Shown piece after piece: positions 37,824 to 58,473 of a stretch of DNA of 64,000 nucleotides (position 1 is its first letter; each line of letters starts with the position of its first letter). The notes beneath the pieces are model-generated. The model ran no database searches and was not told the DNA's origin. It saw only the letters and a list, made by a program, of their open reading frames with translations. The stretch spans positions 62,001-126,000 of IMG/VR virus record IMGVR_UViG_3300045961_000282; one strand, given 5' to 3'. A program made the translations under genes and the position numbers.

Positions 37824-39821
37824 TCAGTAGTCGACCGCGCTGACGTCCAGCGTGCCCGCGGACGCGCCGTTGACGTTCAGCGTCTGGGTGACCCACAGGC
37901 TGTCGAGGCCGGTCTTGGCCACGGCGAGGAACTGCTCGGTGAACATGCAGTAGTCGTTCTTCTGGACGAGGTTCATGTCCCGAACGATGCCGATGTCCAG
38001 CGTGCCGCCGTCGAGCAGCGTGAAGGTGCCCTCCGCGAACAGCGCCCACTCGACGGTGTCCGGGTAGTCGTCCACGGTCGGCTCGGCGCCGCCGGACGCA
38101 CCCTCCATCGACCACGTGGGCCGGATGTTGCGGGCGGCGAAGAACCGCTCGATGGTGGCGTCAGCCAGCGCGAAGGTGGTCTCCAGCCCGTCGCCCGGCA
38201 ACTGCGCGGTCAGATCCGAGCGGATCATCGCGTGCAGCCACTGCGGCCCGACGAAGCGGAGCGGCAGGTTCGGGTCGAGGCGGTGCTTGTAGCGGTACGC
38301 CACAGCGGCGCGCTCCACGGCGATCAGCACGTCGCGTGCGGTGCCGAGGGTCGCGTCGACGGTGTGCGCGTCGGACAGATCCTTGATCTTGTCGAGGACG
38401 TACTGCTCGGCGAACCGGGCAGCGGCGACCAGCGCCAGATCGTTGTGCCGGGCGATCAACTCGGGGAAGGCCCGGGTCATCAGGTTGCCGAAGCACATGC
38501 ACATCGTGACGGCCTCGAGGTACACGTCGGTCTCCGGCGCGCACTGAACGGTGAGGCAGTTCTTCTTGAGGTCCGGGTCCGAAGCGGCGGCGATGTCGTC
38601 GTCGTTGGTCCAGACACCGAAGGCGCCGAGGTACTCGTCGAACGTCGGCGACGGGACGAACCGGATGCCACCGCGGTCGGCGTTGAACGTCGGCAGCGAG
38701 TCCTTGACCGGGGTCGCGGTCGAGCCGCCGATGTCGAACAGGTCGTAGTTCACCGGCAGCGGGGCGCACCAGCCGCCGGAGGCCACGATCACGCTCGGAT
38801 CGGTGACGTTCTTGATCTTCTCGGTGTTGGTGTCGACCTCGTTGCCGCGCAGGGTGCGCTCCTCCGGGAAGGTCGCCAGCAGCGAGGCCACGACGACCTG
38901 CTCGCCGTTGCCACCGGAAGCGCGGCGCAGGCCATGCAGGCGCATCGCCATGGCCTCAGCCAGTGCGAGTCGATCCTTCAGCGGCGACCCGGCGGAGATG
39001 CCGGGGATGTCGCCGCCCGCCACGAGGGCGATCGGGGCCGCGTTGCCGCGGGCCACGGGAAGACGGTCAGCCGGGGCCGAGAACGTCGGCTCCGAGGTTT
39101 CGTTGCTCATCTGAGCCTCCGTGCTCGTAGCGGTGGTGTCTTCGTTGGCGAAGACGGGGGTCTCTTCTTCCTTGTCCTCCTCGGTCGCCTCGGGGGCCTC
39201 AGCGATCTCCTCAGCGGGGATCTCGATGACCTCCTCGATGACCTCGGGAACCTCGTCCTCCTCGGACTCATCCATGGAGAACTCGGCCTCGACAGCGGCC
39301 TCGACGGCCTCCTCAACCGCGGCCTCGGCCTCAGCCGTGACCTCGACGGAGGCCTCGACGGTCTCCTCGACTGCGGCCTCGATGACCTCGTCGGTCGCCG
39401 CCTCTGCCTCGACCGGGACCTCAGTGGCGGCCTCGACGGCCTCCTCGATCACGGCCTCGGTGGAAGCGATCACCGGCTCCTCGGCGACTGCCTCGGCAGC
39501 CTCCTCGGTGGCGAAGGTGGTCGGCGGCTCGGTGGCCTCCTCGGCAGGAGCCTCAGCGGCCTCGGCGTCGGCGCTCTGGATCCGCGTCGCGGCCTGCGCG
39601 GCCTCTGCGGCCAGTTCTGCCTTCTCGGCGTCGCGGCGGCCCATCTCGGCCCGCACGCTCTCCACCGAGTCGGCGAGGAACGTCATCTCAGCCACGGACT
39701 CGCGGCTGACTTCCTGCCCTTCGACAACCTCGAAGGCAGCGATGATGCTGCTCTCCAGTTCCGAGAGTTCGTCTTCGGACAGATCTGCAAGACGGTCGAT
39801 CATCCCTCGGATGTCGTCCAT
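37824..39821 (-). CDS. Major capsid protein (hexamer-type) with a long acidic N-terminal extension
   Basis: AGGAGG RBS. ASGGWCAPLPVNYDL, DSLPTFNADRGGIRF, FGNLMTRAFPELI and LDGGTLDIGIVRD..L...NDY..F.E motifs. Confidence 0.9.
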   Translation of the reverse strand: MDDIRGMIDRLADLSEDELSELESSIIAAFEVVEGQEVSRESVAEMTFLADSVESVRAEMGRRDAEKAELAAEAAQAATRIQSADAEAAEAPAEEATEPPTTFATEEAAEAVAEEPVIASTEAVIEEAVEAATEVPVEAEAATDEVIEAAVEETVEASVEVTAEAEAAVEEAVEAAVEAEFSMDESEEDEVPEVIEEVIEIPAEEIAEAPEATEEDKEEETPVFANEDTTATSTEAQMSNETSEPTFSAPADRLPVARGNAAPIALVAGGDIPGISAGSPLKDRLALAEAMAMRLHGLRRASGGNGEQVVVASLLATFPEERTLRGNEVDTNTEKIKNVTDPSVIVASGGWCAPLPVNYDLFDIGGSTATPVKDSLPTFNADRGGIRFVPSPTFDEYLGAFGVWTNDDDIAAASDPDLKKNCLTVQCAPETDVYLEAVTMCMCFGNLMTRAFPELIARHNDLALVAAARFAEQYVLDKIKDLSDAHTVDATLGTARDVLIAVERAAVAYRYKHRLDPNLPLRFVGPQWLHAMIRSDLTAQLPGDGLETTFALADATIERFFAARNIRPTWSMEGASGGAEPTVDDYPDTVEWALFAEGTFTLLDGGTLDIGIVRDMNLVQKNDYCMFTEQFLAVAKTGLDSLWVTQTLNVNGASAGTLDVSAVDY

Positions 39822-40082: not shown

Positions 40083-40121
40083 GAAAGCGAACGCCACCCC
40101 CGGTTGCCCGGGGGTGGTGTT
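40083..40121 (-). terminator. Intrinsic terminator-like hairpin after the protease gene
   Basis: AACACCACCCCCGG-GCAA-CCGGGGGTGGCGTT followed by CGCTTT, 9 nt after the TAG. Confidence 0.65.
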
Positions 40122-40130
40122 CTTGCCTGC

Positions 40131-43100
40131 CTACACCCTTTCGGTGTCGTAGCCACGCCTGTAGTTCTGCGAATCCACGATGATGCGCTCGAGGAAATTC
40201 ACGATGTCGGCCACGGACCGCTCGACCTCGCCGCTCATGTACGGCCCGAAGTGCTTGGTGATCCGCTCTTCGAGGTTGCTCTGCTTCATGTACCTCTTCA
40301 TCGCGTCTTGGATCTCGGTGGGCAACTGGTCGAACGGGATCGTCGCCTCCGGGCCGCGGGCTTCGATGCGCTCCATCAGGCTGGCCATGTCCTGCGCCGC
40401 CTTGATCACCTCGGACTGGGTGCGCTCGTCGATCTTGCTCTCGGCTGCGGAGTCGAGGGCCTCCTTGGCCAACTTCGCTGTCTCTGGCTCCGCCATCCCC
40501 TCCTGCTCCGCAACGCGCTCGGCCTCCTTGATGGCCTTGAGTGCCGCGCGCACCTCGGGGGCCGAGGAACTCGGCGAGTTGCGCAGCCGGTAGTAGATCT
40601 TGCGGAACCGACCCACGTCGTCGCGGGAGATCTTCTGCTCATCCCACTCGCGGCGGCGCATCGTCTTCAGAGATGCCACCAGCGCCTCGGTGGCCTCAAC
40701 GAAAGGGACGTCGGCAGACAAGTCCTTCCATGTGTCGGGGATCAGTTCCGGGTGACCAAGGGCACGGGCCCGCTTCGAGATATGCTTTCGGATCTCGGGC
40801 TTGTCCGCGGGGTTCCCGCGACCGTACGCCTTGATGGCCGCCTTGAGGTCAGCGACGGTGGCGATCGGGTAGCGACCGCCCTTCATCGCGATACCCTCCT
40901 TGGCCATCTCCTCGCGCTTCTCCGAGGAGTAGTCGCGGAACTCCGCGGCGTCGACGGCCTGCATGGCCAGCGTGATCTCCGACCAGTCGGACAGGTTCTT
41001 CCAGTCCTCGGGGATCAGTTCCGGGTGGCCGAGGGCACGGGCGCGCTTGGCGATGTGCTTGCGCACCTTGGCCCGCTCCGACTCCTTGGCCCGACCGTAG
41101 GACTTGATGGCCCGCTTGAGGTCGGCGACGTCGGCGATCGGGTAGGCCCCATCGGGCAGGGCCCAGCCCTTCTTGGCCATCGCCTTGCGGCGCTCGACGC
41201 TCACCGGCTGAGTCGAGAGAACCCGCGCCTTGGCCATCCGCGCCGAGACCTCCAGCGCCTTGGCATCCAGTGGCGCGAACACCCGCCGCCGGGCGGCCAG
41301 CGCCGCGGCCTGCGGGTCCAGTGCGATCAACTGGTCGGCGTACAGCGGGGCAAGGCCTGCGGCGACCAGCGCCAGCACCTCGCCCGAGGCGACGCGAGCC
41401 TCCACCAGCGGGAACCCGGGGACGTTGACCGAGCACGCGGCAACCAGTTCCAGCGCGCCTTGGATCGGTCGCCAGTCCCCGGAGATGCTCGACGCCCGCG
41501 CGGCACGGACCTGCTCGGCGGTGACCGCCGGGCGCAGCGACCCGGCGACCCAGATGCCGTGGCTGTCCTCGCCTGCCGCCACATCGGCCCACGCGCTGGC
41601 GGTGTCATCGTAGTGCTTGACTGCCTCGCGCGCGTCGGCGCTCAGGCTGGCGTGCCCGCCGGTCAGCGTCAACTGGCCAACGCGAACATCCTCGCCCTCC
41701 TTGGTGCGCACCAGCCCGGTCATGAAGTAGGCGTAGCCCGAGCGCGAGCGCGGCGGGCGGGTGCCGAACCCCATGCCGATGTGGTCGACGTGCCATGCCG
41801 CGAGGTGGCCGAACACCCGGCCGTCGTCGGTGATGGTCAGCCGGGTGGGCTTGGTCAGCCCGGGATTGTCGAACCACTCCTTCGGCGGGTAGATCGGCGC
41901 GGCCTTGAAGCCCGACGCGGTGATCGCGAAGGTGGCCTGCGCCTCCTCGCGCAGCAGGGTGGCCAGTTCCTCAAGCATCCGCTGCTCATCGGGGCCGAGT
42001 TCCTGCGTGTACTCGCCGTCGGGCAGCGGGGCGGGCTCGTCCAGTTCGATGCGGCACTCTTGGAAGGCAGGCTTGGCCACCAGCGTCGCGGCCATGATGC
42101 GACCCTTGGTGATGTCCATCTTGTCGGGGGTGACGGTCTCCTCGTCATCCTCCTTCTTCTCGGCCTCCGTGGTGCCCGGGCCCTTGCCCTTGATCTTGGC
42201 CTCGAAGCGGTCGAGGTCGGCGGACACGCCGCGCAGGAAGCCCTCGCGGATCATCCGCACAGCCTCCATCGCCAGCGGGCTGGTGTCGAACACGCCGGTC
42301 GCGTTGCCCATCCCGCCCTCGACCCGCTCGACGGAATCGATGCGGCCCACGATCGCCGCGCCGTCATGGCCCTGCATGGAGTTGGGCTGCCACAGCAACG
42401 GGATCGGCAGGTCGCGCAGTTCGACCACGCCCTCCTTGAAGGTCCGGCCGTCGCCGGACTCGATCCCCTCCGGCAGCAGCAGGGGGATCCGGAACGTGAC
42501 GGGCGCGGGCTTCTGGCCGTTGAGCATCATCAGGATCGGGTTTGCATCGGGCATGGCTTCTCCTGAGTGATCGGCGGTGGCCACTAGCACCGTATTGTTC
42601 GCGTTCGCCGCGCTGCGCGCAGCCACTTTTGCCCAATACGAACCGGGGCGACCACCCCAGCCGTACATGATCCGGTGCTTCATGTCACCGGTCCACATCC
42701 GTGTCATTTCCTTGTGGCGCAATGCGCACCAACCCTTTGCCCGCGGACCAAGATGCTTGGACAGGTACTTCACGCAGCGATCAAAGTCACCCGGGGAGTT
42801 CCACCTGATCTTCGCTCCGCCCTTCCCGATGGTCCAGTACCGGCGCAACTTCTCGGCATTCCCCCGGTTCCGGTCGGCCCCACCCGCGGCGATCAGGGCG
42901 TCCAGTTCCTCGTCGCTGTACGCCTCCAGCCCGGTGGTGGCCGACTCCAGCGCCGCCGTCAGGCTCATCGTCGCCCCGTCGCGCAGGGCCATCGCCATCG
43001 GGAAGGTGTACTCGGTCCAGAAGTCATCCTCGCCGACGACCAGCGAGTTGAAGACCTGCGTCGGCTGCGACTCGGGGAACGGCGGCAGTTCGGCGATCGG

Positions 43101-43646
43101 CGCGGTCATGTAGGCGATCGTCTCGTGCGGGGTGAAGTCGTGGTCCTCGGAGACGTCGAACCCCTCGGCCTTGAGGTCGTTGACCAACTGCGTGCGCATC
43201 TCGGCCAACCCGGGGATGTCCCACGACATCCACAGCACTGGCTTGCCATCCTCCGGCGGGGTGAACGTGCCCCAACCCTGTGCGCGGCCCTCGACCGGCG
43301 GCCAGTCCGACTCGGCCAACCAACGCCGGGTGAAGTCGTGCAGCCGCTGACGCTCCAGACCGTCGGCCTCACCGATGTAGGCCAACGTGATGTGGCGCTC
43401 GTCGAGGGGCAGTTCCTGCGCCTGTGCTGCAGCCGTGGGACCCACGCCGTACTGGCTGGCCACCTCCGGCACGATGCGGAACGCCAACATCGTCTTGACC
43501 GGTGCCTGCGGGTCGCGCTCCCCCTGCCCCTCGTGGTGCACGTCGCGCACGACTCGGCCACGCGGCAGGATGCGGGAGTCGCGGGCGACGAAGGTCGCGA
43601 CCGACCCGTCGGGGTTCCACAGCGGGGTGATCTCGTCGGGAATCAT
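40131..43646 (-). CDS. Multidomain capsid maturation protease with an N-terminal 2H phosphoesterase
   Basis: ATGA-coupled MIPDEI, about 1171 aa. HITL and HETI 2H motifs; PEGIESGDGR...PLLWQ...GHDGA..VGRI...GVSADLD protease core; DDGRVFGH...SGDWR domain; two ~65-aa repeats (G.YPIA.V.DLK.AIK.YGR). Confidence 0.8.
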   Translation of the reverse strand: MIPDEITPLWNPDGSVATFVARDSRILPRGRVVRDVHHEGQGERDPQAPVKTMLAFRIVPEVASQYGVGPTAAAQAQELPLDERHITLAYIGEADGLERQRLHDFTRRWLAESDWPPVEGRAQGWGTFTPPEDGKPVLWMSWDIPGLAEMRTQLVNDLKAEGFDVSEDHDFTPHETIAYMTAPIAELPPFPESQPTQVFNSLVVGEDDFWTEYTFPMAMALRDGATMSLTAALESATTGLEAYSDEELDALIAAGGADRNRGNAEKLRRYWTIGKGGAKIRWNSPGDFDRCVKYLSKHLGPRAKGWCALRHKEMTRMWTGDMKHRIMYGWGGRPGSYWAKVAARSAANANNTVLVATADHSGEAMPDANPILMMLNGQKPAPVTFRIPLLLPEGIESGDGRTFKEGVVELRDLPIPLLWQPNSMQGHDGAAIVGRIDSVERVEGGMGNATGVFDTSPLAMEAVRMIREGFLRGVSADLDRFEAKIKGKGPGTTEAEKKEDDEETVTPDKMDITKGRIMAATLVAKPAFQECRIELDEPAPLPDGEYTQELGPDEQRMLEELATLLREEAQATFAITASGFKAAPIYPPKEWFDNPGLTKPTRLTITDDGRVFGHLAAWHVDHIGMGFGTRPPRSRSGYAYFMTGLVRTKEGEDVRVGQLTLTGGHASLSADAREAVKHYDDTASAWADVAAGEDSHGIWVAGSLRPAVTAEQVRAARASSISGDWRPIQGALELVAACSVNVPGFPLVEARVASGEVLALVAAGLAPLYADQLIALDPQAAALAARRRVFAPLDAKALEVSARMAKARVLSTQPVSVERRKAMAKKGWALPDGAYPIADVADLKRAIKSYGRAKESERAKVRKHIAKRARALGHPELIPEDWKNLSDWSEITLAMQAVDAAEFRDYSSEKREEMAKEGIAMKGGRYPIATVADLKAAIKAYGRGNPADKPEIRKHISKRARALGHPELIPDTWKDLSADVPFVEATEALVASLKTMRRREWDEQKISRDDVGRFRKIYYRLRNSPSSSAPEVRAALKAIKEAERVAEQEGMAEPETAKLAKEALDSAAESKIDERTQSEVIKAAQDMASLMERIEARGPEATIPFDQLPTEIQDAMKRYMKQSNLEERITKHFGPYMSGEVERSVADIVNFLERIIVDSQNYRRGYDTERV

Positions 43647-45739: not shown

Positions 45740-46011
45740 CAGGACAGGCCCTCCCCGGAGACGTTGATGCCGCGGGCGGTCAGCATGGCCATGTAGGCAA
45801 GCCACTCCTCGCGGGACGCCGACACGATGTTGGCGTGCTCCTCGTAGTCGCTCTGCCGCTCGCCGGTCTCGTCATCGACCGACCCACCCGCTCGGTACTC
45901 GGCCGCGGCGATCGGATCGTAGCGATCGACGCCCTGATCCTTGAGCCACTGTGCCCACATGCTCTGCACCTCGGCAATTGTGGCCAGTTGCTCCTGACCG
46001 CTCGCGCTCAC
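45739..46011 (-). CDS. Small acidic protein, candidate immunity protein
   Basis: 90 aa, GTGA-coupled to the stop of the giant ORF. The immunity role is inferred from position only. Confidence 0.65.
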   Translation of the reverse strand: MSASGQEQLATIAEVQSMWAQWLKDQGVDRYDPIAAAEYRAGGSVDDETGERQSDYEEHANIVSASREEWLAYMAMLTARGINVSGEGLS

Positions 46012-49000
46012 ACCACACCTCCGCTCGCTCCGCCGCCCGCAGGGGCGCCCGCCTCAGGTACTGCGCCCTCGGGGACCTCACCCTCGGGGACTTGCGGAGC
46101 GGGGGCCGCGGGGGCTGCTGGCCCACTGCCCCCGCGCTGCGCCTCTGCCTTTCGACGCATGCGCTCCATCCTGCGCATCATCTTCTCGGTGTAGTAGTTC
46201 TCGACGAGGGTGTACAGCCGATCCCTGCGCAGGTTCTTGCGTCCCTGCCATGAATTGCCCAGCATGCCCTTCTTGCCCGCCCATGGCTGCCCAGATTCAT
46301 CGGCTGGGTCGTAGCCGATCTGAGACAACTCGAACGGGGTCGGGAAGTTCTCGTCGCTTGGCGAGGTGTTCTGCATGCGCTCTTGGATCGCGGCAAAGTC
46401 GGCACGGTCCTTGTCCGTCCTCAGGTGCCGTTGGATAGATGACATCAAGTACCGGGCCTGACCGAGAGGGTCTGACTTCCAGCCGAATCCTGCCGTTGCC
46501 CATGCATATCCACCGACTGAGATGTTTGCATGAACATCATAATGCTTGATGCCATTCAGAATGGACCAATCGGACGTCTGTTTCACCAATTGTCCAGCAA
46601 GTCCGGTGTTCTGAACGTCATTATCCATGATCATGTATGCGGCATAAATGCTGGTGTTTTGAACCGTGACGTAGCCGTTTCCGACTCGCGGCATGTCCCG
46701 CAGGACATTTTCGCGCTGCCGTTCAATTGCTTGCGCCAGTTCAGATGGTGAATCAGCATTGAGCGCTTGGCTGATCGCGTCATCACCGACCTTGGCTCGG
46801 CGCAGGGCGTCGGCGATGTCGGATGTTGAAGCAGCATCCATGTCAACGATCCATCGGCTCGCTTCAAGGATCTGTGGTGCGGTCAACTGCAACCCGGAAG
46901 ACCCGACTTGATGCAGTTCGGCCAGCGCCTTCTCGCCGTACGCCTTGCGCGCGGAGCCAAACGCATCAGACAACTTCTTCACATTTTGCCCGACCGCATT
47001 CCACAGATCTTCGATAGATGCGACGTTCCCATCGGAATCGAGAATCGTGGCCCCTCGCGCATAGGACCGCATCAATGAGAAGTCGAACGAGGAGGATCCA
47101 TCCCCTGCATAACTGCTCAGAGCCTTCTGCAATTCACGAAGTTGGTTGTAATTTCCAATCGAGAATCCCGTTTCACCGAGCGGTTTCGATTGGTCCGCTT
47201 CGCTGACGAATTCACGGAACTCGTAGTTGATGTTTCCGTTGCGATCCCGGATCGGGCTTGAGGTGACGACCATTGCCAGCGCCGGGGCACCGGGGCGATC
47301 GGATATCTGAGTCGCCTCAGCAACGGCCCGCAAGGCACGTGTCGAGTTGTCCGCGGTCATGTCATCGAGCCGCGTTGCGGCCCCTGCGCGCTCGAAATCG
47401 TGGCCCAGCGGGTTGAACTGAGCAACCAACTGCTGGATCTCGCGCTTCTTGATCTGCTCGGCGCGGCGGCTCATCACCGACGGGCCATTGAGTTCCCTGA
47501 CCGGGACCCACGAGCGCGACCGCAGGGCGGCGGCGCCGAGGTTGGTTCGGTTGACGCTGGCCAGTGACGCGATCTCGAACGGTGTCGGGAGCCCCTCGAG
47601 GTCGGTGGCATCCTCGAGGTCGCGAACCATATCCGCGATGATCGCCTGCGCCGCTTCGTCGTCGCCCGAATCCCGGGCCGCCCGCGCCAGCATGGCCCGC
47701 ACGATGTCCTTGGTGGAGTCAAAGCCACCCATGGCGATGACGTCCCAGTCGAAGCCCGAGTTCGCCGCCGTGAGCCGCGCCGACGGGGGTGCATCGACAA
47801 TCTGCAGCGACGTTGCGCCGTTGGCGATCGCGTGGCGCTCCGCCGCCTTCAGGGCCTCCTGTTGGGCAAGGCGCACCGACTGCGACGTTCCCGGATCGAT
47901 CCCGACCCTGACGGTCGGAGGAAGGTCGCCGCTGCGGTCGATCTGCAGGGTGAACTTGCCGCCATTTTCGGCGCGGCCTCGCGGCTGGAGGGTCACGGCG
48001 ATGCGCCCGCCGGTCGGGGTCAGTTCGATGCTGTCAATCGACTGAATCCCACGGAACTCGGGGTTGGACAGCAGGTCGGCGAACAACTGCTCGCGAACCG
48101 CGTCGGGGACCGAGGAATCGGCAAGATTGGCGATGGATGGCGCCGACTGCCCTATGTGCATGATCCGGGCCGCTTCGCCCGCCCCGTGGCGACTGCGCAG
48201 GGCGTCGGAGTCAGCGGGACTGAAGGAGGCATTGATCCCCGACGTCCCGAAGTAACGGACTGGGTCGGCGACCAACGGGCTGGACTGCGCCAGCGACAGA
48301 TCGTAACCGCGCTCCCGTCGCACCTCCCCGGTGCGCAGGTCGCGAACTGTCACATACCCCCACGAGGCAGCAGCGTTCGTCCCGGGCTCCGGTTCGGTGC
48401 CAAGAACCACGGCAGACTGGGCGCTTGAGCCATATCCCATCCTTACCGTGTCGCCGACGACCAGACCGTTTCCGCCCCCGTCCGTGACAACGCCATCGGT
48501 CCCGGAAGTTGGTCGACGAACCAGTTGTCCATCGGAATCGACCAAGGCATTGACCTGTGCCTGACGGACTCGCTCGACGTCCATCTCGTCCTGCAGGGTC
48601 CGCATCGCGAACAGCGCCTCGCGGCGTTGCTGCATGGGGGTTGCGGGATCCAAGGCGATGCGCTCGACGACCGCGAGCGCCTGCATGTTCACCTCATGGC
48701 GGGCCGCGTACAGCATCGTGGGTGATGAGAGGCCGTTGGCCGCCGAAATCCCTGTCCGATAGGCCCGCGCAGCGTCCGGATCAACGCTCTCCATGACCCC
48801 AGTGAGGTCGTCGCCATAGCGGTTGATCGCGATCTGCATCAGCGATGAGTTGGCAGCCACCAATCCCGGCGGGACCGTCTGGCCTCGCTCGCGCCGGGCG
48901 ACCATGAGGTTGCGCAGGATCCCATTCGCTCCGACGAGGTCTCCGCCATCGATGGCCCTGCTCGCGACCTGCAGCGCCGACCGCTCTGCCTCACTGACCC

Positions 49001-52000
49001 CATCAGACGCAGCCGCTTGGTCGATGGCCGCCTTCGCAGAATTCCGGCGCGATGTCGCCGAGTAGCCTGAGGGTTGCTGAACTTCCCCAATCCCCCCCAT
49101 CGCGTCGCGGATCGATGCGTAGGCCAAGTTGACCGCATCGGCACGATCTGGGTCATAGCCTTCAAACGAAGAGCCCAGACCGGCGTTGTTCAGCAACGCC
49201 GCGGACGCCCGCTCGAGTTGATCTCGCGCCGTGGCGGCATCGCCGTCGCGCAGAGCGGTCGCTGCGGACTGCAGGACCGTGGAAACGTCAGCATCGGCCG
49301 TGTCCGCGAAGACTGATTGAGCCAGTTCATCGATCTGGTCGGCCTTCTCGGTGAAATCAACCGGGGGTGCCTCGGGAGTCGTTGACTCAGGAACGGTCGC
49401 CTCAGGCTGCGGCTGGTTCGACCCAACCCGCATCCTGCTATCGATCCGGTCGCGCAGGCCGACCGCGACGGACCGCCGGTAGTCACCGTAGGCGAGCGAG
49501 TCGATCACGTCGGTCAGGATGTTGCGCGCGGTGGCTCCGTCGCCGTTGCGCAGCGCGTCCACGGCTCGCTGCCCCATCCTGCGCAGGTCGGCCGGAACGC
49601 CTTGGGCTTCGAGGATTCCGGTTGCCTCGGAGATGAGGTCGCTGTAATCCACCTGCGGCTGAGCCTCGGGAGCCTCGGGCTCGGGAGCCTCGGGAGCCTC
49701 GGGCGCCGTCGGCTCCTCGGGGGCCTCGGGGGCCTCTGGGGCCTCTGGGGCGGCTTCGGGCTCGGGGGCCGGGGGTTCCTCGGGGGTCGGCCTGTCCTGT
49801 GGCGCCTGTCCGCGGGACAGTTCCTCTCGAACCATACGGACGATGTCGGCATCACTGATGGCGCCGTCGACCGCGGGGTTCTCCCAAAGGCGCTCACCCG
49901 GGCGGATGTCAGCGCCGCTGTTGCGGAGGTCCTCGATCGACTCCGGGTCCATCTCATGCAGGACCCCGGCGCGCTCAAGGACGCGCAGGACGCGCTGAAC
50001 CTCGTCGTCGCTCCACTGCGGGAACATGCCCCGGATCTCCGTGAGATCCCAGTTGACGACGCCGTTCTGGCCAACGAGTGCATCGACCGCTTGGGCGACA
50101 TTGGAATCCACCGAAGCGATGTCAAGACCGACCGACTCGCTCTGTGCGTAGGCGCGCACAATCTGATCGGCGATCTCGGCGTCGGTGAGGTTGGCGGCGC
50201 CCGCCCCGTACCCGTACCGCGCCATGCTGTCGCCGATGTCGATCCGCGACAGGACTCCGGCGTCGACCAGTCGGTCCAGCATCCCTTGGGCGCGGGCCAT
50301 GTTCATGTTACCGTACGTCGCCACGAACTCCGGCGTGACCGCGAGGTAATCGCGCAGCGCGGCGGCGAACTGCTGGGCGCGGGCAATCTCGGCGCTGCCG
50401 GGTGCCGACACGGGCAGGCCCGGAACGCCGTCATTGGGATCGCGTCGGTCGGGCATGGCGTCGCGCACGTCACCGTTGGGATCCCACACGGCGAGGGCAT
50501 CGCGCAGTTCTGCATCGCGCGCGTCGCCCGCTTGGCGCAGCCGCCACAGGGCGGCGTCGAACATGATCCGCTGCTCCGCTGAACCGTCAGGGAGTTGCAG
50601 CGCCGCAGCCAGCGTGGCACGGGCGTTCTGGCGATGCCGGTGGGCGGTCGCCTTCGCCGGGTCGCGCGGGGACACCGACATGTTGGTCGGCAGGCCACCC
50701 ATGATGTTCGCCACGCGCGACCGGGTGTCGGCGGCGGCGGCGGCCCAGTCGTTGTCGCCCCAGTGGGAGTCGCGCAGGGCCATCATGCGCCGCACTGCGT
50801 CCGCATCGCCCGCCTGCGACAGCCGCGAGAGGCCGAGGGAGTAGAAGGCCTCGAACTCGCCGAACTGCCCCGCCCGGTAGGCGCGTCGGGCCAGCGCGAA
50901 GGAGTTGGCCGCCTTCCGCCGGGCGTCGGCCTCCTGCCCCTCGCCGAGTTCGGCCACGAGGGCCCGCTGGCGGGTGACCTCATCAGAGATCGAGGCGATC
51001 TCCGCGTCGGTCCACGAAGCCCCCCGGGCGGTCGGGCGGCTCGGGGCGAGGTTGTCGTCGGCCAACCGGAACGTCGGATCGTCAAGGTTGCGCAGCCGGT
51101 CGGGGTTGACCCGAACCCGCGCGGCGTTCATCAAGCCCCGCAACTCCGTAGCGTGCACGAGATCCAGCGCGTTGCGGGCGCGCATCAGGGCGGCCCAGCG
51201 CTTCGCCGAACCCGGCTCAGCGTTCAGCGCATCCCCGAATGCCTTCTTCGCGAAGATCAGGGCCGACCCCGCCTCGCTGCCGCGTCCCATGTAGCGGATC
51301 AGTGCTGCGATCGACCCGCTGATCGCCTCGTCGTCCATGTCCCATGAGGTGTCGCTCAGGGAACGGCCGTGAGCACGATGCCGGATGTCCAGCAACTCAT
51401 CGCGCAGTTGGGCCAGATCGGCATTGTCGCCGGAGCGGCTCGCGGCGCGGTTGAGGCGGTTGATGACCCGCTCCAGCACGGCTTCGCGATCGAAGTTGGT
51501 GGCCGGTCCGAGGTCGCCGCGCAGCAGCCGGTTCAGATCGCGCTGGGCGACGTTGATGGCCGCCTGCACCTGCTGGCTGGTCAGGAATCGGGGGTCGCCC
51601 GCCAGTCCGTTGAGCCGGTCGGCCACGGACTGCAGGCTGTCGACCGAGGATGAGTAGTCAGCCTCATCCATGTAGTCGTCCATGTACCAGTACCCGTCGG
51701 GATCACCCTCGGGGGTCTGGAGGATCCGGTTCCCGGACTCGATCCACTCGCTGGTCGCGTCGGCCTGCTCGCGGGTGTAGTTCTCGAGGCTAACCTGCGG
51801 GTAGTCGTCCAGATAGCGGTTGAGCAGGGCATCGGCCCGTGCTGACGCCTCAAGCAGGCTCACCCGATCGGCTGCGCTGAACGCACCGTTGGCCTCTTGG
51901 GTGAAATGCCGCGACGCGAAGAGCAGCCGGTTGGCGCGGCCACGGTTGGCCCGGCGCGTTCCCAGCGGCTCGGACAGATCACCGATGCTGTCGACCAGTT

Positions 52001-55000
52001 CCTGCCAGTAGCGCTGGACGTTGGGGCGCGCCCCGGACAGCGCCTCAGTGATGCCGGACAACTGATCCGCATAAGGCTGCTGCCGCCACCCTGCAGAGTC
52101 GGTGGCCCGCTCCGCCGAAACCTGCGCCTCCTGCGGGGTGACCGTCGGCGCGGCGTCGGGCTCGTCTCCCGCGTCGGCCATCTGCATCGCCTGCGCGTAG
52201 GCGTCCAGCGCCGCAGGATCGGCGTCCTGCCCTTGCGCGTTGGCCTCCAGCGCCGCGTTCGTCGCGGGGTCGTTGCGCACCGCCTCGGCCGCGTCGGCCT
52301 CGGAGAGGGCGGTTTCCACGTGGCGGGTGGTGGATTCGTCCATCCCCGCCTCGCGCGCCACCTGTGCAACAGACTCACGGGTCGGCTCGGGGGTACTGGC
52401 CTCTGGGGTCGCAGAAACAGCCCCTCGGGGCCCTTCGCCCAACAGCGCATCCGCATACTCGGCACTATCGCTGCCTGCGAGGTCGTTCAAGAACTCGTCG
52501 ACGTTGCCATCGTGCTCATCCATGAGGTTGCGCACGAGCGCATTGCGTTGCCGCTGCGTCAGCGAGTCCCACTGATCCACCGCGTCGCTGATTGCGCCTT
52601 CCGCGCGCAGGTTGATCGGATCTTCGTCCTCGATCGGCGCGACCTCTGCGGCGGGCGCCTGCTGCGCCCCGGTGCGTTCGCGCCGTCGCCGCTCCCGCTG
52701 CAGGTCGCGGCGGTCGCGATTGATCTGGCGCTGCCAGTCGCGTGCCGCTGCCCGGCGCTCGGCCCGGTACTGCCGCGCCGCCCGGCGCTCGGCGGCCAGC
52801 CGTCGGCGCTCGCGGGCCTTGGGCTGGTTGCGCCGGTCGATGCGCGTGCGCGGGTATCCGGCCTTGCGCAGCATGCTGCCGATCCGGCGGCTCTGTGCAC
52901 GGGCCTTGCGGGCGGCGTTGACCTCACCAAGCGCCTCGGCCTCGGCGGCCCAGTCGCTCAACGCCTGCTGCATGTCGGCCAGCGCCTGCGCTGCGGCATC
53001 CTCGTCGCCGTTGGCGAGGGCTTCGCTGTACCGACCGCGCGCGTCATCGAGCCGCGAAGTCGCTCCGCCCGAACGCTCCTCGATCTGCCGCTTCGTCTCC
53101 GCGAGGTACTCGGCGTCCTCGGCGAAGTCGAAGTTGTCGTTGGGGTTACGACCAACCGCCGGGTTCTCGCCCAGCGGCACCCGTGGCGGCCCGTTCTGCT
53201 CGGCCTGCTCCCGGGCAGCGGCAATGTCAGCCGCTTCTTCGAGGGTGTCCGCGGCGTCGTCGAGGGCCCCGGCGACGTTGTCGCTGTCCTGAGCCGCAAT
53301 GGCGCCGTCGTCCACAGCGTTGGCGGCGTCCGACAGGCTGTGGCTGTCGGCGTCGGGGCGGATCGAGCCGTCGTCGCTGACCACCGAGTTGATGGCATCG
53401 CGAGCCGCCTGAACCTCGGGACGCGCGGCAACCTCGGGCTCGGCCTCGACGGCGTCCTCGACGTTGAACAGCGCCATCTGGTTGAGGTCATCGGCTTCGG
53501 CGTCGAACTCGGTGTTCAGCCACGCCCCGCGCGCGTCGTCTTCCTCGGCATCGAAATCTGCGTCGTGCTGGCGCAGGAAGTCGGCCAACTCGGTCCGCAG
53601 CGGGCCCATATGGTTCCGAAGGCCACGCCACGCAGCGAAGTCGTCATCCTCGATGTCATCGAGGCGGGACATCATGCTGTCGATGGTTCCGACGGCTGCG
53701 CGGATGTTGCGGATCGTGTCGTCGCCACTTCCGGCGTCTGCTAGCGCGAGGAAGTCGCTGATCCGACGCATCCGCTCACGCAGGTAGTCATGCGTGAGTT
53801 CGTCGGGGAAGGCGTTGATGGCGTCGCCGATCAAGCCAACCCCGTTGGCCGCGTCGTCGATGTCGATCAGTTGCTCCATCAGGTCGCCCTGAGAAAGGCC
53901 CTGCCATGCACCCATCGCACCTTCGGCGGCCAGATCGGGAAGGACCTCCAGACCCGACTCCTCCAGCGCCTGCAGTTCCTCGTTGCTCAGGCCCTCGGGG
54001 GCGCCAGCGATGTCGACCAGATTCCCGTCGGCGTCATACTCGACCTCGATGCGATCGCCGGGGGACAGTTCGGTTCCGGGCCACTGGCTGGACCAGCCCA
54101 AGGGCACCTCGAAGTAGCGGCGGCCCGGGGCGGGGCGAGCCTCGGCCTCGGGGGCCTCGCCTGCCGTCACCTCTTCGTGGCTGACGATCCGCCCGTCGCG
54201 GCGGACCACCCGGAAGGTCCTGCCGCTTTCGGCTCCCCGGTACGGGTACACCGTGGTGATCTCGCCATCGGGGGTGCGCTGGGTTTCCAGCCACCCGCTG
54301 ATCTCCTCGCCGTCCGGGGTGCGGTAGTTCCCAGTCATTCCCTGAACTGGGCGCTGCTCTTCGGGGGCTTCGGGGATTTCGGCGCGCGGCTCCTCCTCGG
54401 GAATCTCGGCCCGCACCCCCTCGGGGGCCTCTTCATCGACCTCTTCAAGATCCGTCGACTCGAAGGTAGCCAGATCCAGCGTCCGTCGGGCACCGCGCTC
54501 GCGGGCCGCGGCCTCAGCCGCCTCGGGGGTGTCGTAGACGTCGACGATGTCGGCGACGACCTCTCCGGTGTCGGGGTCGACGACGAACGCGACATGCGCG
54601 CCGTTCTCGCCGCTCAACTCCTCCCAGTTGTCGTCGATGAACGTCGCCGCATTGGCCCGCTGGAACTCCGCGAACTGGAACCGCCGCTCATTGCCGCGGG
54701 CAACCGCGATGCCGGACTCGGGGAAAGCCCCCTCGGCGGGGTCGAACGCGACGCCCTGCCGCTCATCGAAGGCACGAATGACGTGCTCGACTGCATCGTT
54801 GGGAACCATATCCTCGTCGGCGTTGACCCGGAGGTGCCTGCGGTGCCGGTCGAGACGCTGGCGGAACTTGCGGTCGGTCTCCTCCTGCTTGGCCCGCTGG
54901 GCCTCAAGGTCGAACGGCTCGACGCCGCGCTCGATGCCGCCGTCGACCGCAGCCTTGAGGATGGCGACCATGTCCTCGACGTCGGTGTCGGCGTGGTGCT

Positions 55001-57938
55001 CGCCCGTGCGGTCGATGCCGTAGAACCGGCGCATCGTGTCCATCTTGTCGTTGCGCGGAACTCCCTCGCCCCGACCGCGCAGGTTCTCGCCATGGAGCGC
55101 GCGGAACACCGGAAGGGTGTCGAGGATGCCGCCCTCAGGCATCCAATCCTGTCCGCCGGTCACACCCAAGTCGCGCAAGCGCTGCCGGATCGGCTCAAGG
55201 TCGACCCCCTCGGACTCCCCTGCGCGAGACGGGTTCATCACCGCGTCGATCATGTCGCGCAGCATCGAGGTGTCGAAGGCGGCGTTCTGCGCCACCACCA
55301 TGTCGGGCCCGATGAACTCGACCATCTCGGGCAGGACTTCCTGCCACGGGCGTTCCTGCGATGCCTCCTCGTCGGTGATGCCGTGAACCTGCTGAGCGAA
55401 CGGGTTGCTCGGCTTCCCGGGGTTCATCCTGAAGACGCGGCGATCGACCTCTTCGCCGTTCTCGAAGCGGATCAGCGCAGCGGAGACGGGGCGGTCTGGA
55501 AGGTCCATGCCCTCGGCGTCGGCCTGCATCCGCTCGCCCGCAAGGCCAGTGGTCTCCAAGTCGAAGCCGACCAAGGATCCATTGTTGATCCGGTCACGCA
55601 GCGCTTCGAGCGAAACAGTCCCATCCTCGTTCTGAATGCCAGCGGCCCGTCCCTGCAGGGCGGGGAACGTGCGGCCGGGCAGGAAGGGCTCCTTCAACTT
55701 GCCACGGACGAACTGCTTGCTCGGCAGCCGCTCGCTGGCCCGCTTGCCAAGGATGCGGGCAGTCTCCACCAAACCCGCAGCGGCGTCGCTGACGTCAACC
55801 GCGAGCCTGCTGTCGTCGCCACCCGACAACCGACGGCGCAGGGCGGCCCGCTGCACGGCGGTGGCCGCGTTGGCAACATCCTTGGCCCACTTGCCGAGAT
55901 CGCTCTCGCGCGCCTCGCTGTCGGCGTCGACTGCGCGCAGGGCGGCCACGGCGTCGGCTGCGTCGGGGTTGTCGGCCACGAACCCGTCGAGCAGCCCGTC
56001 GAGGTTGTCGTAGGCCATGTCGAAGTTGCGCCGCGCCGGGGCGGTGATGTTCTCTAGCCGCTTGTGCATGTCGCGGCTGTCGCGCGCGAACGTCTCCACC
56101 ATGCCTGCGCGCTCTTGAACGCCTGCCGCAACGTCGCGGCGGGCACGATCCTCAGCGGAAACTAGCGCACTGGGCTGCCCGTCGATCTCCGCGATGCGCC
56201 GCTCGGCGGCCTTGCGGGCCCGGTTTGCGGCCAGAGCGGCGCGGTCGAAGACCGTGCTGCGCATCGCCAGCGGCTCGATCTCACCGGACTCGATGTTGCG
56301 CGCCATTGCCTCAAGGGCATTGACATCCTCGGGGCCCAGCGCGTCGACAGTGTCCGGGTCGGTGATCAGCGCCCGGGCGTCGGCGACAGCGTCGTCCGAA
56401 CCATACGGCGAGGTCTCGGGGGCGGCCTCCGGCTCCGACTCGGGAATCTCCGCGACGACCTCGGGCTCGGGGGCTACTTCACCGGCATCCCCGACGCCCT
56501 CAGCGCCTCGGTCACCCTCTGCAGAAACTGCTCCTTCGTCTCCCCCGGGTTCGGCTTCATCAGCACCGGCTGGGGCTGCGCCTTCGGGGCCTTCTCCTCG
56601 TCCACCTTCTTCTCCCTCTGGTTGTGGCTCGGGGGCCGCCGGGGCCTCGGCTTCGGGGGCTTCCTGCGGCTCGGTCGTGGCCCGCTGCTCCGGGCGCGTG
56701 AATGCCCGGATCGTATCCTCGCGGCCACCTGATCCGGCGGCCACGCCGATCTCGTCGATGCGCTCCTGAATGTCCGCAGGCTGGTCCTCGCGGGCGTCGC
56801 GCAGAGCGCGGCGCAGGTTCTCGCGGCGGTCGTCGCCGGGGTCGTTGAGCAGGCCGACGATGGCGTCAGCGACCTTGTTGCGCTGGTCGAAGTCGGGATC
56901 AACGGGGGCGAGGCTGCGGAACAGATCCACCGCCTGTTGCGCCAGCGCGTCATCCCCTTCCTCGGTGGGGATGTCCATCCGGTCGGCGACCTCGCGCAAC
57001 TGGCGGCCGAGGTCGCGGCCCTGCGCGAAGGCGAAGTTCCCGCGCTCGAAGTCATCGGCGATGCGTCGCAGGTTGTCGGCCGCGAACGGATCGACGATCC
57101 CGTCCGCGTTCCTCGCGATGGCCTTGTCGGCGATCTGCAGTGCCCGGGCGAAGCGGTCCTTCTGTCCTGCCGGGGCCATCCGCTGGCGCCGCTTGGCGCC
57201 CTCCATCAGGCGGTTGAGTTCCCGCACCTGCTGCTGCCCGAGCGGCTCGCCGCGCGCGCCCGATCCGTCCCATTTCTCGTAGTCCCCGCCGATCAGGTCC
57301 TCGGGGTCGTTCTCGCCGAGGGCCTCGGCATCATTCGGGTTGTCCGGCAGTTGGGCCCGCCCGCCCGCCTTGGTCCCGGGGTCGGAAACGATCTCCAACT
57401 GGTCCGGGGACAGGCGCACAAACCGCGTCTCGCCGGGCTGCAGGTCATCGGGAACCCCGATTCCCATGCTCTCGATGTCGTCGTTGGTCGGATCACCGCC
57501 GCGCCCGAGATCATTTACTCGGGTGCTGATTTCAACAACAACGTCTTCATTGTTGTTCAATGCGCCCGCAATTCGCCCGTAGGCAACCGCGTCGCGACCA
57601 TCGGGGCGCTTGAAGACGGAGACGATCTGGAACGTCGCCTCTTCCTCGCCGTTCTCGTTGCGCACCCAGTTGGGCTGCTTGCGCCGCCGCGGGCCGATGT
57701 ACTTGAGGAACCGGCCCTTGCGGTCACGCAGCCAGTAGATCTCCTTGAAGTCCGCAATCAGCGCAAGGACCGCGCCGGGCAACGCCCCGCGGCCGACGAA
57801 CTGGGAATCCGTCCCGTAGAAATCGAGGATGTCGAACTCGGTCGCCAGCGGCGGCAGGCCGATCTCCTTCCGTGCCGCGTTGGTGCTTGCGACCATCGAA
57901 TCGAAGCCGAAAACCGGCGAGCGGTCGTCAGAGTGCAC
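46008..57938 (-). CDS. Giant polyvalent head-associated protein (DEDDh 3'-5' exonuclease, wHTH pair, SH3-like, two GNAT-like domains)
   Basis: 3976 aa open frame, GTG start after AGGAG. FDLETTG...HGIT...VAQNAAFD...LDTL...HHADTD (DnaQ-like, ~54950-55590); VQNTGLAG...HANISVGGYAWATAGF (GNAT-like, ~46230-46680). Confidence 0.85.
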   Translation of the reverse strand: MHSDDRSPVFGFDSMVASTNAARKEIGLPPLATEFDILDFYGTDSQFVGRGALPGAVLALIADFKEIYWLRDRKGRFLKYIGPRRRKQPNWVRNENGEEEATFQIVSVFKRPDGRDAVAYGRIAGALNNNEDVVVEISTRVNDLGRGGDPTNDDIESMGIGVPDDLQPGETRFVRLSPDQLEIVSDPGTKAGGRAQLPDNPNDAEALGENDPEDLIGGDYEKWDGSGARGEPLGQQQVRELNRLMEGAKRRQRMAPAGQKDRFARALQIADKAIARNADGIVDPFAADNLRRIADDFERGNFAFAQGRDLGRQLREVADRMDIPTEEGDDALAQQAVDLFRSLAPVDPDFDQRNKVADAIVGLLNDPGDDRRENLRRALRDAREDQPADIQERIDEIGVAAGSGGREDTIRAFTRPEQRATTEPQEAPEAEAPAAPEPQPEGEEGGRGEGPEGAAPAGADEAEPGGDEGAVSAEGDRGAEGVGDAGEVAPEPEVVAEIPESEPEAAPETSPYGSDDAVADARALITDPDTVDALGPEDVNALEAMARNIESGEIEPLAMRSTVFDRAALAANRARKAAERRIAEIDGQPSALVSAEDRARRDVAAGVQERAGMVETFARDSRDMHKRLENITAPARRNFDMAYDNLDGLLDGFVADNPDAADAVAALRAVDADSEARESDLGKWAKDVANAATAVQRAALRRRLSGGDDSRLAVDVSDAAAGLVETARILGKRASERLPSKQFVRGKLKEPFLPGRTFPALQGRAAGIQNEDGTVSLEALRDRINNGSLVGFDLETTGLAGERMQADAEGMDLPDRPVSAALIRFENGEEVDRRVFRMNPGKPSNPFAQQVHGITDEEASQERPWQEVLPEMVEFIGPDMVVAQNAAFDTSMLRDMIDAVMNPSRAGESEGVDLEPIRQRLRDLGVTGGQDWMPEGGILDTLPVFRALHGENLRGRGEGVPRNDKMDTMRRFYGIDRTGEHHADTDVEDMVAILKAAVDGGIERGVEPFDLEAQRAKQEETDRKFRQRLDRHRRHLRVNADEDMVPNDAVEHVIRAFDERQGVAFDPAEGAFPESGIAVARGNERRFQFAEFQRANAATFIDDNWEELSGENGAHVAFVVDPDTGEVVADIVDVYDTPEAAEAAARERGARRTLDLATFESTDLEEVDEEAPEGVRAEIPEEEPRAEIPEAPEEQRPVQGMTGNYRTPDGEEISGWLETQRTPDGEITTVYPYRGAESGRTFRVVRRDGRIVSHEEVTAGEAPEAEARPAPGRRYFEVPLGWSSQWPGTELSPGDRIEVEYDADGNLVDIAGAPEGLSNEELQALEESGLEVLPDLAAEGAMGAWQGLSQGDLMEQLIDIDDAANGVGLIGDAINAFPDELTHDYLRERMRRISDFLALADAGSGDDTIRNIRAAVGTIDSMMSRLDDIEDDDFAAWRGLRNHMGPLRTELADFLRQHDADFDAEEDDARGAWLNTEFDAEADDLNQMALFNVEDAVEAEPEVAARPEVQAARDAINSVVSDDGSIRPDADSHSLSDAANAVDDGAIAAQDSDNVAGALDDAADTLEEAADIAAAREQAEQNGPPRVPLGENPAVGRNPNDNFDFAEDAEYLAETKRQIEERSGGATSRLDDARGRYSEALANGDEDAAAQALADMQQALSDWAAEAEALGEVNAARKARAQSRRIGSMLRKAGYPRTRIDRRNQPKARERRRLAAERRAARQYRAERRAAARDWQRQINRDRRDLQRERRRRERTGAQQAPAAEVAPIEDEDPINLRAEGAISDAVDQWDSLTQRQRNALVRNLMDEHDGNVDEFLNDLAGSDSAEYADALLGEGPRGAVSATPEASTPEPTRESVAQVAREAGMDESTTRHVETALSEADAAEAVRNDPATNAALEANAQGQDADPAALDAYAQAMQMADAGDEPDAAPTVTPQEAQVSAERATDSAGWRQQPYADQLSGITEALSGARPNVQRYWQELVDSIGDLSEPLGTRRANRGRANRLLFASRHFTQEANGAFSAADRVSLLEASARADALLNRYLDDYPQVSLENYTREQADATSEWIESGNRILQTPEGDPDGYWYMDDYMDEADYSSSVDSLQSVADRLNGLAGDPRFLTSQQVQAAINVAQRDLNRLLRGDLGPATNFDREAVLERVINRLNRAASRSGDNADLAQLRDELLDIRHRAHGRSLSDTSWDMDDEAISGSIAALIRYMGRGSEAGSALIFAKKAFGDALNAEPGSAKRWAALMRARNALDLVHATELRGLMNAARVRVNPDRLRNLDDPTFRLADDNLAPSRPTARGASWTDAEIASISDEVTRQRALVAELGEGQEADARRKAANSFALARRAYRAGQFGEFEAFYSLGLSRLSQAGDADAVRRMMALRDSHWGDNDWAAAAADTRSRVANIMGGLPTNMSVSPRDPAKATAHRHRQNARATLAAALQLPDGSAEQRIMFDAALWRLRQAGDARDAELRDALAVWDPNGDVRDAMPDRRDPNDGVPGLPVSAPGSAEIARAQQFAAALRDYLAVTPEFVATYGNMNMARAQGMLDRLVDAGVLSRIDIGDSMARYGYGAGAANLTDAEIADQIVRAYAQSESVGLDIASVDSNVAQAVDALVGQNGVVNWDLTEIRGMFPQWSDDEVQRVLRVLERAGVLHEMDPESIEDLRNSGADIRPGERLWENPAVDGAISDADIVRMVREELSRGQAPQDRPTPEEPPAPEPEAAPEAPEAPEAPEEPTAPEAPEAPEPEAPEAQPQVDYSDLISEATGILEAQGVPADLRRMGQRAVDALRNGDGATARNILTDVIDSLAYGDYRRSVAVGLRDRIDSRMRVGSNQPQPEATVPESTTPEAPPVDFTEKADQIDELAQSVFADTADADVSTVLQSAATALRDGDAATARDQLERASAALLNNAGLGSSFEGYDPDRADAVNLAYASIRDAMGGIGEVQQPSGYSATSRRNSAKAAIDQAAASDGVSEAERSALQVASRAIDGGDLVGANGILRNLMVARRERGQTVPPGLVAANSSLMQIAINRYGDDLTGVMESVDPDAARAYRTGISAANGLSSPTMLYAARHEVNMQALAVVERIALDPATPMQQRREALFAMRTLQDEMDVERVRQAQVNALVDSDGQLVRRPTSGTDGVVTDGGGNGLVVGDTVRMGYGSSAQSAVVLGTEPEPGTNAAASWGYVTVRDLRTGEVRRERGYDLSLAQSSPLVADPVRYFGTSGINASFSPADSDALRSRHGAGEAARIMHIGQSAPSIANLADSSVPDAVREQLFADLLSNPEFRGIQSIDSIELTPTGGRIAVTLQPRGRAENGGKFTLQIDRSGDLPPTVRVGIDPGTSQSVRLAQQEALKAAERHAIANGATSLQIVDAPPSARLTAANSGFDWDVIAMGGFDSTKDIVRAMLARAARDSGDDEAAQAIIADMVRDLEDATDLEGLPTPFEIASLASVNRTNLGAAALRSRSWVPVRELNGPSVMSRRAEQIKKREIQQLVAQFNPLGHDFERAGAATRLDDMTADNSTRALRAVAEATQISDRPGAPALAMVVTSSPIRDRNGNINYEFREFVSEADQSKPLGETGFSIGNYNQLRELQKALSSYAGDGSSSFDFSLMRSYARGATILDSDGNVASIEDLWNAVGQNVKKLSDAFGSARKAYGEKALAELHQVGSSGLQLTAPQILEASRWIVDMDAASTSDIADALRRAKVGDDAISQALNADSPSELAQAIERQRENVLRDMPRVGNGYVTVQNTSIYAAYMIMDNDVQNTGLAGQLVKQTSDWSILNGIKHYDVHANISVGGYAWATAGFGWKSDPLGQARYLMSSIQRHLRTDKDRADFAAIQERMQNTSPSDENFPTPFELSQIGYDPADESGQPWAGKKGMLGNSWQGRKNLRRDRLYTLVENYYTEKMMRRMERMRRKAEAQRGGSGPAAPAAPAPQVPEGEVPEGAVPEAGAPAGGGASGGVV
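56474..56605 (-). CDS. Nested 43-aa gene in the +1 frame of the giant gene
   Basis: AGGGAG-N6-GTG start; MDEEKAPKAQPQPVLMKPNPGETKEQFLQRVTEALRASGMPVK then TAG. Host-frame codons become A/T-ending over exactly this interval. Confidence 0.65.
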   Translation of the reverse strand: MDEEKAPKAQPQPVLMKPNPGETKEQFLQRVTEALRASGMPVK

Positions 57939-58473
57939 CAGACTCTCCTGTCGTACCGTTGCTGTTCGTCATGCCGTCACGCTGTGCTTCACAGATGTTT
58001 GAGAGTAATGCGTCGAACTGATCCGCCGAAGGCATTTCCGCGATCCCCTGCTCGGCGTCAAAGCGACGCACCATCGAATCCGCCCACCGCTTGCCCGGGT
58101 CGCCGCCCCAAAGCAGCCACGCCACGTAGCCCGGGGTCTCCGAGCCCTTCTTGGCCCAGTCGGGTTTGCGGTCCACCGCGTGCCGGGCGAAGTACGCATG
58201 CATCTTCCGTATGGTTTCCCGACTACATGACTGCCCCGCAGCCAACTGCTTGCCGCGCGCCCGGCCGACGTCGGTCAGGTTCTTTCCGCCGCGGCCCTCC
58301 TTGAGCAGGTCGAGGCCGCGCTGCGCAGCCTTCTGCACGTCCTTCGGCGGGGCGTAGGTGTCGCTGGCCGCCGCCGTGATGGGCGCTACGGCTGCCAGTG
58401 GGGCGCCGATCTTGGCCATCATCCGCCGCCGCAGGTCGTCGCTGCCGATCTGGTAGCCGGTCTGGCTGGTCAT
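57928..58473 (-). CDS. Head-associated protein (WLLWGGDPGxxWA family)
   Basis: ATGA-coupled to the portal. PPKDVQKAAQRGL...VGRARGKQLA...TIRKMHAYFARH...VAWLLWGGDPGKRWA. Confidence 0.75.
   Translation of the reverse strand: MTSQTGYQIGSDDLRRRMMAKIGAPLAAVAPITAAASDTYAPPKDVQKAAQRGLDLLKEGRGGKNLTDVGRARGKQLAAGQSCSRETIRKMHAYFARHAVDRKPDWAKKGSETPGYVAWLLWGGDPGKRWADSMVRRFDAEQGIAEMPSADQFDALLSNICEAQRDGMTNSNGTTGESGAL

Follow-up and report, generated by a model that had tools for sequence, protein, structure and literature searches.

The window analysed here, a stretch of 64,000 nucleotides covering positions 62,001 to 126,000 of IMG/VR virus record IMGVR_UViG_3300045961_000282, carries on its minus strand a gene (40131..43646) whose 1171-amino-acid product, P0001, joins a 2H phosphoesterase domain to a predicted prohead (capsid maturation) protease. 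We propose that this 2H domain is a capsid-loaded, LigT-like counter-defence phosphoesterase that rides on the head-maturation protease, a reading to which we give a probability of roughly 0.6. The proposal joins three things: a conserved LigT-like 2H subfamily, the repeated capture of this subfamily by head proteins, and virion proteomics of one of its members. Enzymes carried in the virion act before phage gene expression, which makes them candidates for the first counter-defence moves of a phage; few of them have been characterised.

The 2H domain and its nearest relatives

The core of the 2H domain, which is LigT/ThpR-like, occupies residues 47-217 of P0001 (42996..43508; all P0001 features lie on the minus strand) and bears the hallmark of the 2H superfamily, namely two H-x-T/S-x motifs on a pair of pseudo-symmetric lobes (H85-I-T87-L and H174-E-T176-I). 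In the translation, the first catalytic motif reads RHITLAYIG (residues 84-92, with His85 and Thr87, both invariant in 28 sequences; 43371..43397), and the second reads FTPHETIAY (residues 171-179, with His174 and Thr176; 43110..43136) and is preceded by an invariant His169. The initial annotation, whose range of 43000-43646 corresponds to residues 1-215 and takes in the 2H core together with the extension that precedes it, had described two HxT motifs about 90 residues apart at the N-terminus of the protease; both are present, and the catalytic histidines His85 and His174 are 89 residues apart. The fusion that it described is likewise borne out, since the Pfam family PF13563 (2'-5' RNA ligase superfamily) matches residues 80-183 with 42.8-46 bits against a cut-off of 27 and the same 1171-residue open reading frame (ORF) contains a protease fold at residues 380-540. 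In an alignment of 28 homologues of the domain, the members of which share 23-92% identity with the window protein, the residues H85, T87, H174, T176, G124, G126, F128, D143, H169, F171 and P173 are invariant, and the subfamily can be recognised by the signature DH[GD]F[TQ]PHxT, which includes the extra invariant His169. The AlphaFold2 model of residues 1-260 shows the 2H fold with a mean predicted local distance difference test score (pLDDT) of 83, the core being mostly above 90. Judged from the alignment and the model, the N-terminal domain of P0001 is a 2H phosphoesterase in which both catalytic motifs are intact, with a predicted enzymatic activity.

The domain had also been called Acb1-like, and as a statement of family membership this label does not stand. 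A sequence-profile search of the PDB with the 2H domain retrieved LigT/ThpR-type structures (1vdx, 1.6e-8; 5h7e, 1.2e-7; also 1iuh), and Acb1 chains were absent from the same search even at E<=10; the Pfam Acb1 model PF23474, which is present in the searched library, did not match P0001 at E<=1. Foldseek placed 5h7e, 1iuh and E. coli LigT on top (E 2e-9 to 1e-5) and the Acb1 structure 7t27 only at rank 32 (E 8e-4), and the closest structural neighbours of the domain are LigT/ThpR enzymes. Comparison scores were 15.5-16 for Usb1, approximately 14 for AKAP18, approximately 12.5 for rotavirus VP3 and coronavirus ns2, 9.9-10.2 for Acb1 and 9.6 for the poxvirus cyclic GMP-AMP (cGAMP) phosphodiesterase. 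The catalytic histidines of T4 Acb1, H44 and H113, are 69 residues apart, against 89 in P0001, and the compact Acb1 fold with its C-terminal lid has been described for the 152-residue homologue of phage FBB1 (PMC9117128). Because the profile search and Foldseek both favour LigT/ThpR and PF23474 is silent, we regard the domain, on sequence and modelled fold, as LigT-like and outside the Acb1 family. Nor can it be equated with ThpR, because its score with the ThpR equivalog model TIGR02258 of NCBIfam (36.4-39.2 bits) is below the cut-off of 65.7; PF02834 (LigT_PEase) similarly gives 16-19 bits, below its cut-off of 23.3. The fold by itself leaves the substrate unfixed, because viral LigT-like phosphodiesterases are polyphyletic and separate lineages cleave different messengers, 2'-5' oligoadenylate or cGAMP isomers (PMC11410667).

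Fusion to head proteins and proposed carriage in the virion

The fusion of 2H to protease is kept in all five full-length orthologues of P0001 (P0002-P0006, which are metagenomic, 1172-1262 amino acids long and 50-92% identical in the 2H part), and the 2H subfamily is found on other head proteins as well. A scan of IMG/VR with the 2H domain profile returned 27 loci, in which most of the domains lie inside long head proteins; a word-index protein search with residues 40-225 alone gave no match, which is due to its length and word limits and not to an absence of relatives. The prohead proteases fused to 2H are of at least four kinds, and portal, MuF-like and capsid proteins are also among the partners, every fusion to a head protein consisting of one open frame. 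Thus, 2H follows Peptidase_S78 at four loci (L008, L009, L012 and L014), precedes the Mu gpI protease (PF10123) at four others (L013, L017, L024 and L025), precedes a P0001-type protease in more distant phages (P0008 and L007), and precedes an XkdF-type protease (Peptidase_S78_2) in gp18 of Arthrobacter phage Edmundo, a Laroyevirus. A single 891-residue chain combines 2H, S78 and an HK97-type major capsid protein in a triple fusion (L029:4677-7349), and 2H occurs with a capsid protein in L020. Portal proteins are followed by a C-terminal 2H in L021:2289-5426 and L016:3315-6380, the latter belonging to phrog_776, the portal family of the window itself. The domain is further found with a Zeta/polynucleotide kinase (PNK)-like kinase in a 1732-residue polyvalent protein (P0007) and as stand-alone copies (L005, L010 and L011). 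In a tree of the 2H domains, each architecture forms its own well-supported clade and the deep nodes are unresolved; independent fusion events therefore cannot be counted from the tree, although the differences in partner family and domain order point to several such events. Among predicted viral structures, the closest are those of large actinophage proteins that bear the names RNA ligase, structural protein or capsid morphogenesis protein.

The partners of 2H are head-assembly proteins that, in the assembly of tailed phages, lie in or face the interior of the procapsid. In Gordonia phage GMA2, the C-terminal domain of Orf10 (883 amino acids, phrog_2659) scores 60.8 bits against the 2H subfamily profile. 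Mass spectrometry of purified GMA2 virions by Dyson et al. in 2015 detected Orf10 at 29.4% coverage (PMC4524720 Table S5), and one of the listed peptides spans the second HxT motif, as we checked on the Orf10 translation; mature virions thus physically contain a member of the subfamily. In 2017, Iyer et al. reported 'polyvalent' proteins in which a 2H domain is joined to MuF or portal and predicted that these are injected with the DNA; they observed that RNA ligases are never found alongside such head-associated 2H domains and suggested that the domains act as RNases or degrade signals (PMC5512222). P0001 fits this polyvalent-effector architecture, with an enzyme domain in one chain with a protease and scaffold-like part, encoded in the head module. 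That the enzyme is packaged for delivery, one of two suggestions made in the initial annotation, is by comparison the best-supported reading, given the recurrent fusions to head-interior proteins and the GMA2 virion data, and we infer by analogy that the protease-fused 2H domain is packaged too.

In the mechanism that we propose, the 2H domain would be taken into the procapsid interior during assembly because it is part of one chain with the protease and a scaffold-like protein. There it would probably be cut free by the protease, remain in the filled head and enter the next host cell with the DNA, in the manner of T4 Alt, the T4 internal proteins and the 'polyvalent' MuF and portal fusions. 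As a late protein, it would also be synthesised in the cytoplasm, at one copy for each protease. Its function would most likely be counter-defence through the cleavage of a phosphodiester or cyclic phosphate, with candidate targets being a host immune signal, such as the cyclic oligonucleotides of CBASS (antiphage signalling that is based on such molecules) or of type III clustered regularly interspaced short palindromic repeats (CRISPR) systems or a 2'-5'-linked species, or else an RNA end.

The identity of the carrier suggests a further role. Prohead proteases were reported in 2026 to activate nucleotidyltransferases related to cGAS and DncV (CD-NTases) by cleavage, which explains the late firing of CBASS (PMC12991175), and a further paper (10.1101/2023.05.21.541620) makes the same link between prohead protease and CBASS trigger; the premise from which the initial annotation had started, that prohead proteases trigger CBASS, is thus backed by the literature. 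On this basis, the 2H domain could be solely an antidote in cis, never delivered, that works late in the producing cell and destroys the CBASS signal which its own protease has triggered, with one antidote made per trigger. The fusion of 2H to four kinds of prohead protease and the ability of viral LigT-like enzymes to cleave cGAMP isomers (PMC11410667) agree with such a role. However, 2H is equally fused to non-proteases (portal, MuF-like and capsid proteins), the 2H domain of GMA2 is found in mature virions, the domain lies outside the Acb1 family, and cyclic-nucleotide activity is known for none of this 2H subfamily; we therefore consider an antidote of this kind alone to be clearly improbable. 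A broader version would make the 2H domain an antidote to protease-sensing immunity, that is, a signal-degrading phosphodiesterase welded repeatedly onto the trigger and onto other head-interior proteins, which is produced late in infection in equal number with the trigger and is also carried into the next cell. We hold this version to be speculative and on the whole unlikely; if true, the proteins defined by DH[GD]F[TQ]PHxT would form a new family of anti-signalling nucleases distinct from Acb1 and would provide the first counter-defence enzyme fused to its own trigger. Because a prohead protease is reported to activate CBASS and the 2H fold is known to destroy cyclic-nucleotide signals, the hypothesis is a sharp and testable one.

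Immune signals or RNA ends

Several observations weigh against a capsid-loaded counter-defence enzyme. The 2H domain is absent within 3 kb of the 80 best IMG/VR homologues of the P0001 protease (51-58% identity), which bear other N-terminal regions, mostly of 800 to more than 1000 amino acids. The fusion is rare in this protease family, and because these closest homologues and the cultured relatives do without 2H, the domain is, on present sequences, an accessory element that occupies a variable N-terminal position. Retention of 2H in mature heads is seen only in the MuF-like fusion of a distant phage. It is common for prohead proteases to digest themselves and to exit the head, and no cleavage site was identified between the P0001 domains. 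Lastly, the nearest characterised enzymes by both sequence and fold are RNA 2',3'-cyclic phosphodiesterases, which points to RNA ends and not to immune signals, and in P0007 the 2H domain comes with a Zeta/PNK-like kinase, a pairing also found in RNA repair enzymes.

The last two points lead to RNA end-healing of the ThpR/LigT type, in which the enzyme would open 2',3'-cyclic phosphate ends on transfer RNA or ribosomal RNA cleaved by anticodon nucleases or toxins of the host. The initial annotation had named LigT-type RNA repair as the alternative, and this proposal is the best match to the fold and to the nearest characterised relatives, whereas the partner enzymes that repair would call for, a ligase and a kinase, were not found in the genome. 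Neither RNA ligase of the Rnl2 type (PF09414), RtcB (PF01139) nor the AAA_33 kinase gave a match in the 206-kb, ~99% complete phage genome; the T4 Rnl1 model PF09511 was also without a match, but its control was silent as well, so that this result is uninformative. The absence of a detected RNA ligase, RtcB or polynucleotide-kinase-like gene weakens the case for a self-contained repair pathway; completion by a host ligase such as RtcB, or by another enzyme, is possible. RNA repair is further disfavoured by the TIGR02258 score given above, which at 36-39 bits is far under the 65.7 equivalog cut-off, by the observation that RNA ligases are never partners of head-associated 2H domains (PMC5512222), and by the little that would be gained from a capsid location unless the damage were immediate. 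Taken together, we judge RNA end-healing to be unlikely.

A second alternative within RNA biology is an offensive RNase resembling Usb1, which would trim or cut RNA to leave cyclic phosphate ends and would be injected against host or defence RNAs such as CRISPR RNA. Such a role would parallel the PBECR RNase domains that are fused to MuF or portal, but the 2H domain is only 8% identical to Usb1 and no RNA-binding module is seen beside it, and we consider this alternative very unlikely. Between the two substrate classes, we lean towards the degradation of a signal over the repair of RNA as the function of the capsid-loaded 2H domain.

The protease, its neighbourhood and comparison with known systems

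From its N- to its C-terminus, P0001 comprises the 2H phosphoesterase, a small conserved domain, the prohead protease, a conserved beta-rich domain, a pair of repeats and a terminal tail. Its ATG is at 43646 and its stop codon at 40131-40133; the ATG overlaps the TGA of the preceding gene as ATGA, a GGAG lies 5 nt upstream, and the start residue is common to the five full-length orthologues, which together make this start credible on sequence grounds. An N-terminal extension (residues 1-46; 43509..43646), modelled as three short beta-strands with pLDDT 55-87, is kept in P0002-P0005, and the N-terminus of P0006 is longer and different. The small conserved domain (residues 260-323; 42678..42869) belongs to phrog_6439 and lies just before the protease in most relatives and also after 2H in the S78-2H fusions.

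The protease fold at residues 380-540 (42027..42509) is that of a prohead serine protease, similar to T4 gp21 and herpesvirus assemblin. A candidate catalytic pair, His427 (42366-42368) and Ser475 (42222-42224), 48 residues apart, is invariant in 30 homologues. Pfam gave no match anywhere in residues 380-1171, Peptidase_S78 included, and the homologue Cece gp70 matched Pfam Peptidase_S78 with an E value of only 0.015; hhalign comparison of the P0001 protease family with S78 domains confirmed by Pfam, run on shallow alignments, gave no significant match. The identification as a protease is accordingly based on the fold, the invariant His and Ser residues and synteny, and with these we take residues 380-540 to be the predicted prohead protease. 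The label 'portal protein' that phrog_859 attaches to the protease region (384-808) was rejected as a probable mislabel because the true portal is encoded at 58470-60398 and the region has a protease fold. The conserved beta-rich domain (residues 579-823; 41178..41912) matches phrog_18402, 'head maturation protease', in the N-terminal part of that profile; the family holds both this domain (profile 9-251) and a 2H segment (profile ~379-574). It is followed by two 61-residue repeats (826-886 and 917-977; 40716..41171) that are 64% identical; further copies occur in P0003, the motif is common to an unrelated 2H fusion (the L018 ORF), and no tandem DNA repeat accounting for the protein repeats was found. 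The C-terminal tail (residues 978-1171; 40134..40715) is rich in charged residues and aligns with Microbacterium phage Cece gp70 as far as residue 1156; from the position of the gene before the capsid gene, the tail may act as a scaffold or capsid-targeting segment.

The window, with a G+C content of ~66%, is part of a 206,257-bp record estimated to be ~99% complete, from an actinobacterial phage whose nearest cultured relatives are Microbacterium and Arthrobacter phages of roughly 190 kb each. The 2H-protease gene sits in the head module between the portal gene (58470..60398, minus strand; phrog_776, E 3e-99) and the major head protein gene, which is directly downstream (37824..39821, minus strand; phrog_777, E 3e-94). 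The module also encodes a 3976-residue protein (46008..57938, minus strand) with a DEDD/RNase T-like exonuclease domain at residues 790-991. This exonuclease is its sole recognisable domain, and the protein looks like a giant polyvalent (head-delivered) protein; its C-terminal ~250 residues resemble, by eye, the C-terminus of P0009, whose gene (L004 2752-5472) is directly upstream of a 2H-protease gene in a 49-kb IMG/VR contig. Right after the portal gene, a 181-residue ORF (57928-58473, minus strand) matches phrog_2859. In relatives, the phrog_2859 domain is found at the N-terminus of long protease polyproteins (L032) or just before 2H (L020 and L022), and it may be another movable head-interior module. 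An open frame of 1444 residues on the plus strand (38232-42566), antisense to the capsid and protease genes, was rejected as a high-G+C shadow ORF and not a gene.

2H on MuF and portal carriers (2017) and Acb1 were already known, and the protease fusion is present in GenBank under inconsistent annotations. We found no published description of protease fusions, nor of this 2H subfamily as recurrently fused to several prohead protease families. Members are encoded by culturable SEA-PHAGES phages (Arthrobacter Laroyevirus and Gordonia phages), so that a test is within reach and the annotations can be corrected.

Compared with Acb1 (T4 gp57B; FBB1 7T26/7T27; PF23474), a free protein of ~150 residues with a lid, the P0001 domain is larger, LigT-like and fused, and packaging of Acb1 is not mentioned in PMC9117128. 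The LigT/ThpR enzymes (E. coli LigT 5LDI, D. radiodurans cyclic phosphodiesterase 5H7E, P. horikoshii PH0099 1VDX and T. thermophilus 1IUH) share 17-19% identity with the domain; they are free-standing and cellular, whereas the P0001 domain forms the N-terminal end of a head protease polyprotein encoded by a phage and its subfamily is set apart by the DH[GD]F[TQ]PHxT signature with the extra His169. The proteases of phages Cece, Zooman and A3Wally are 42-55% identical to P0001 over residues ~265-1156, and Cece has the gene order of the window (portal, very large protein, protease, capsid), but the actinobacteriophage capsid maturation proteases (Cece gp70; a mycobacteriophage MuF-like fusion) carry 660 to more than 1000 residues of other N-terminal sequence, without 2H. 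With the polyvalent 2H proteins (PMC5512222), P0001 shares the head-gene context, the absence of an RNA ligase partner and the predicted delivery with DNA; GMA2 Orf10, a MuF-like fusion of the same 2H subfamily, is an example of such a protein detected in virions. The carrier is a prohead protease in P0001 and MuF or portal in that study, where 'prohead protease' appears in the reference list only and no protease carrier was found.

Also comparable in design is gp18 of the Laroyevirus phages (Edmundo, Laroye, Salgado and others). Its gene (e.g., MN585972, L001:5764-6876) is annotated across GenBank records as RNA ligase, aldolase class I, capsid maturation protease or hypothetical. The N-terminal 2H domain of gp18 is 36% identical over 110 residues to that of P0001; as in P0001, a prohead protease comes after it, and the gene lies between the portal/MuF and capsid genes. 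Unlike P0001, gp18 is a 370-residue protein with an XkdF-type protease, encoded by a 60-kb siphovirus.

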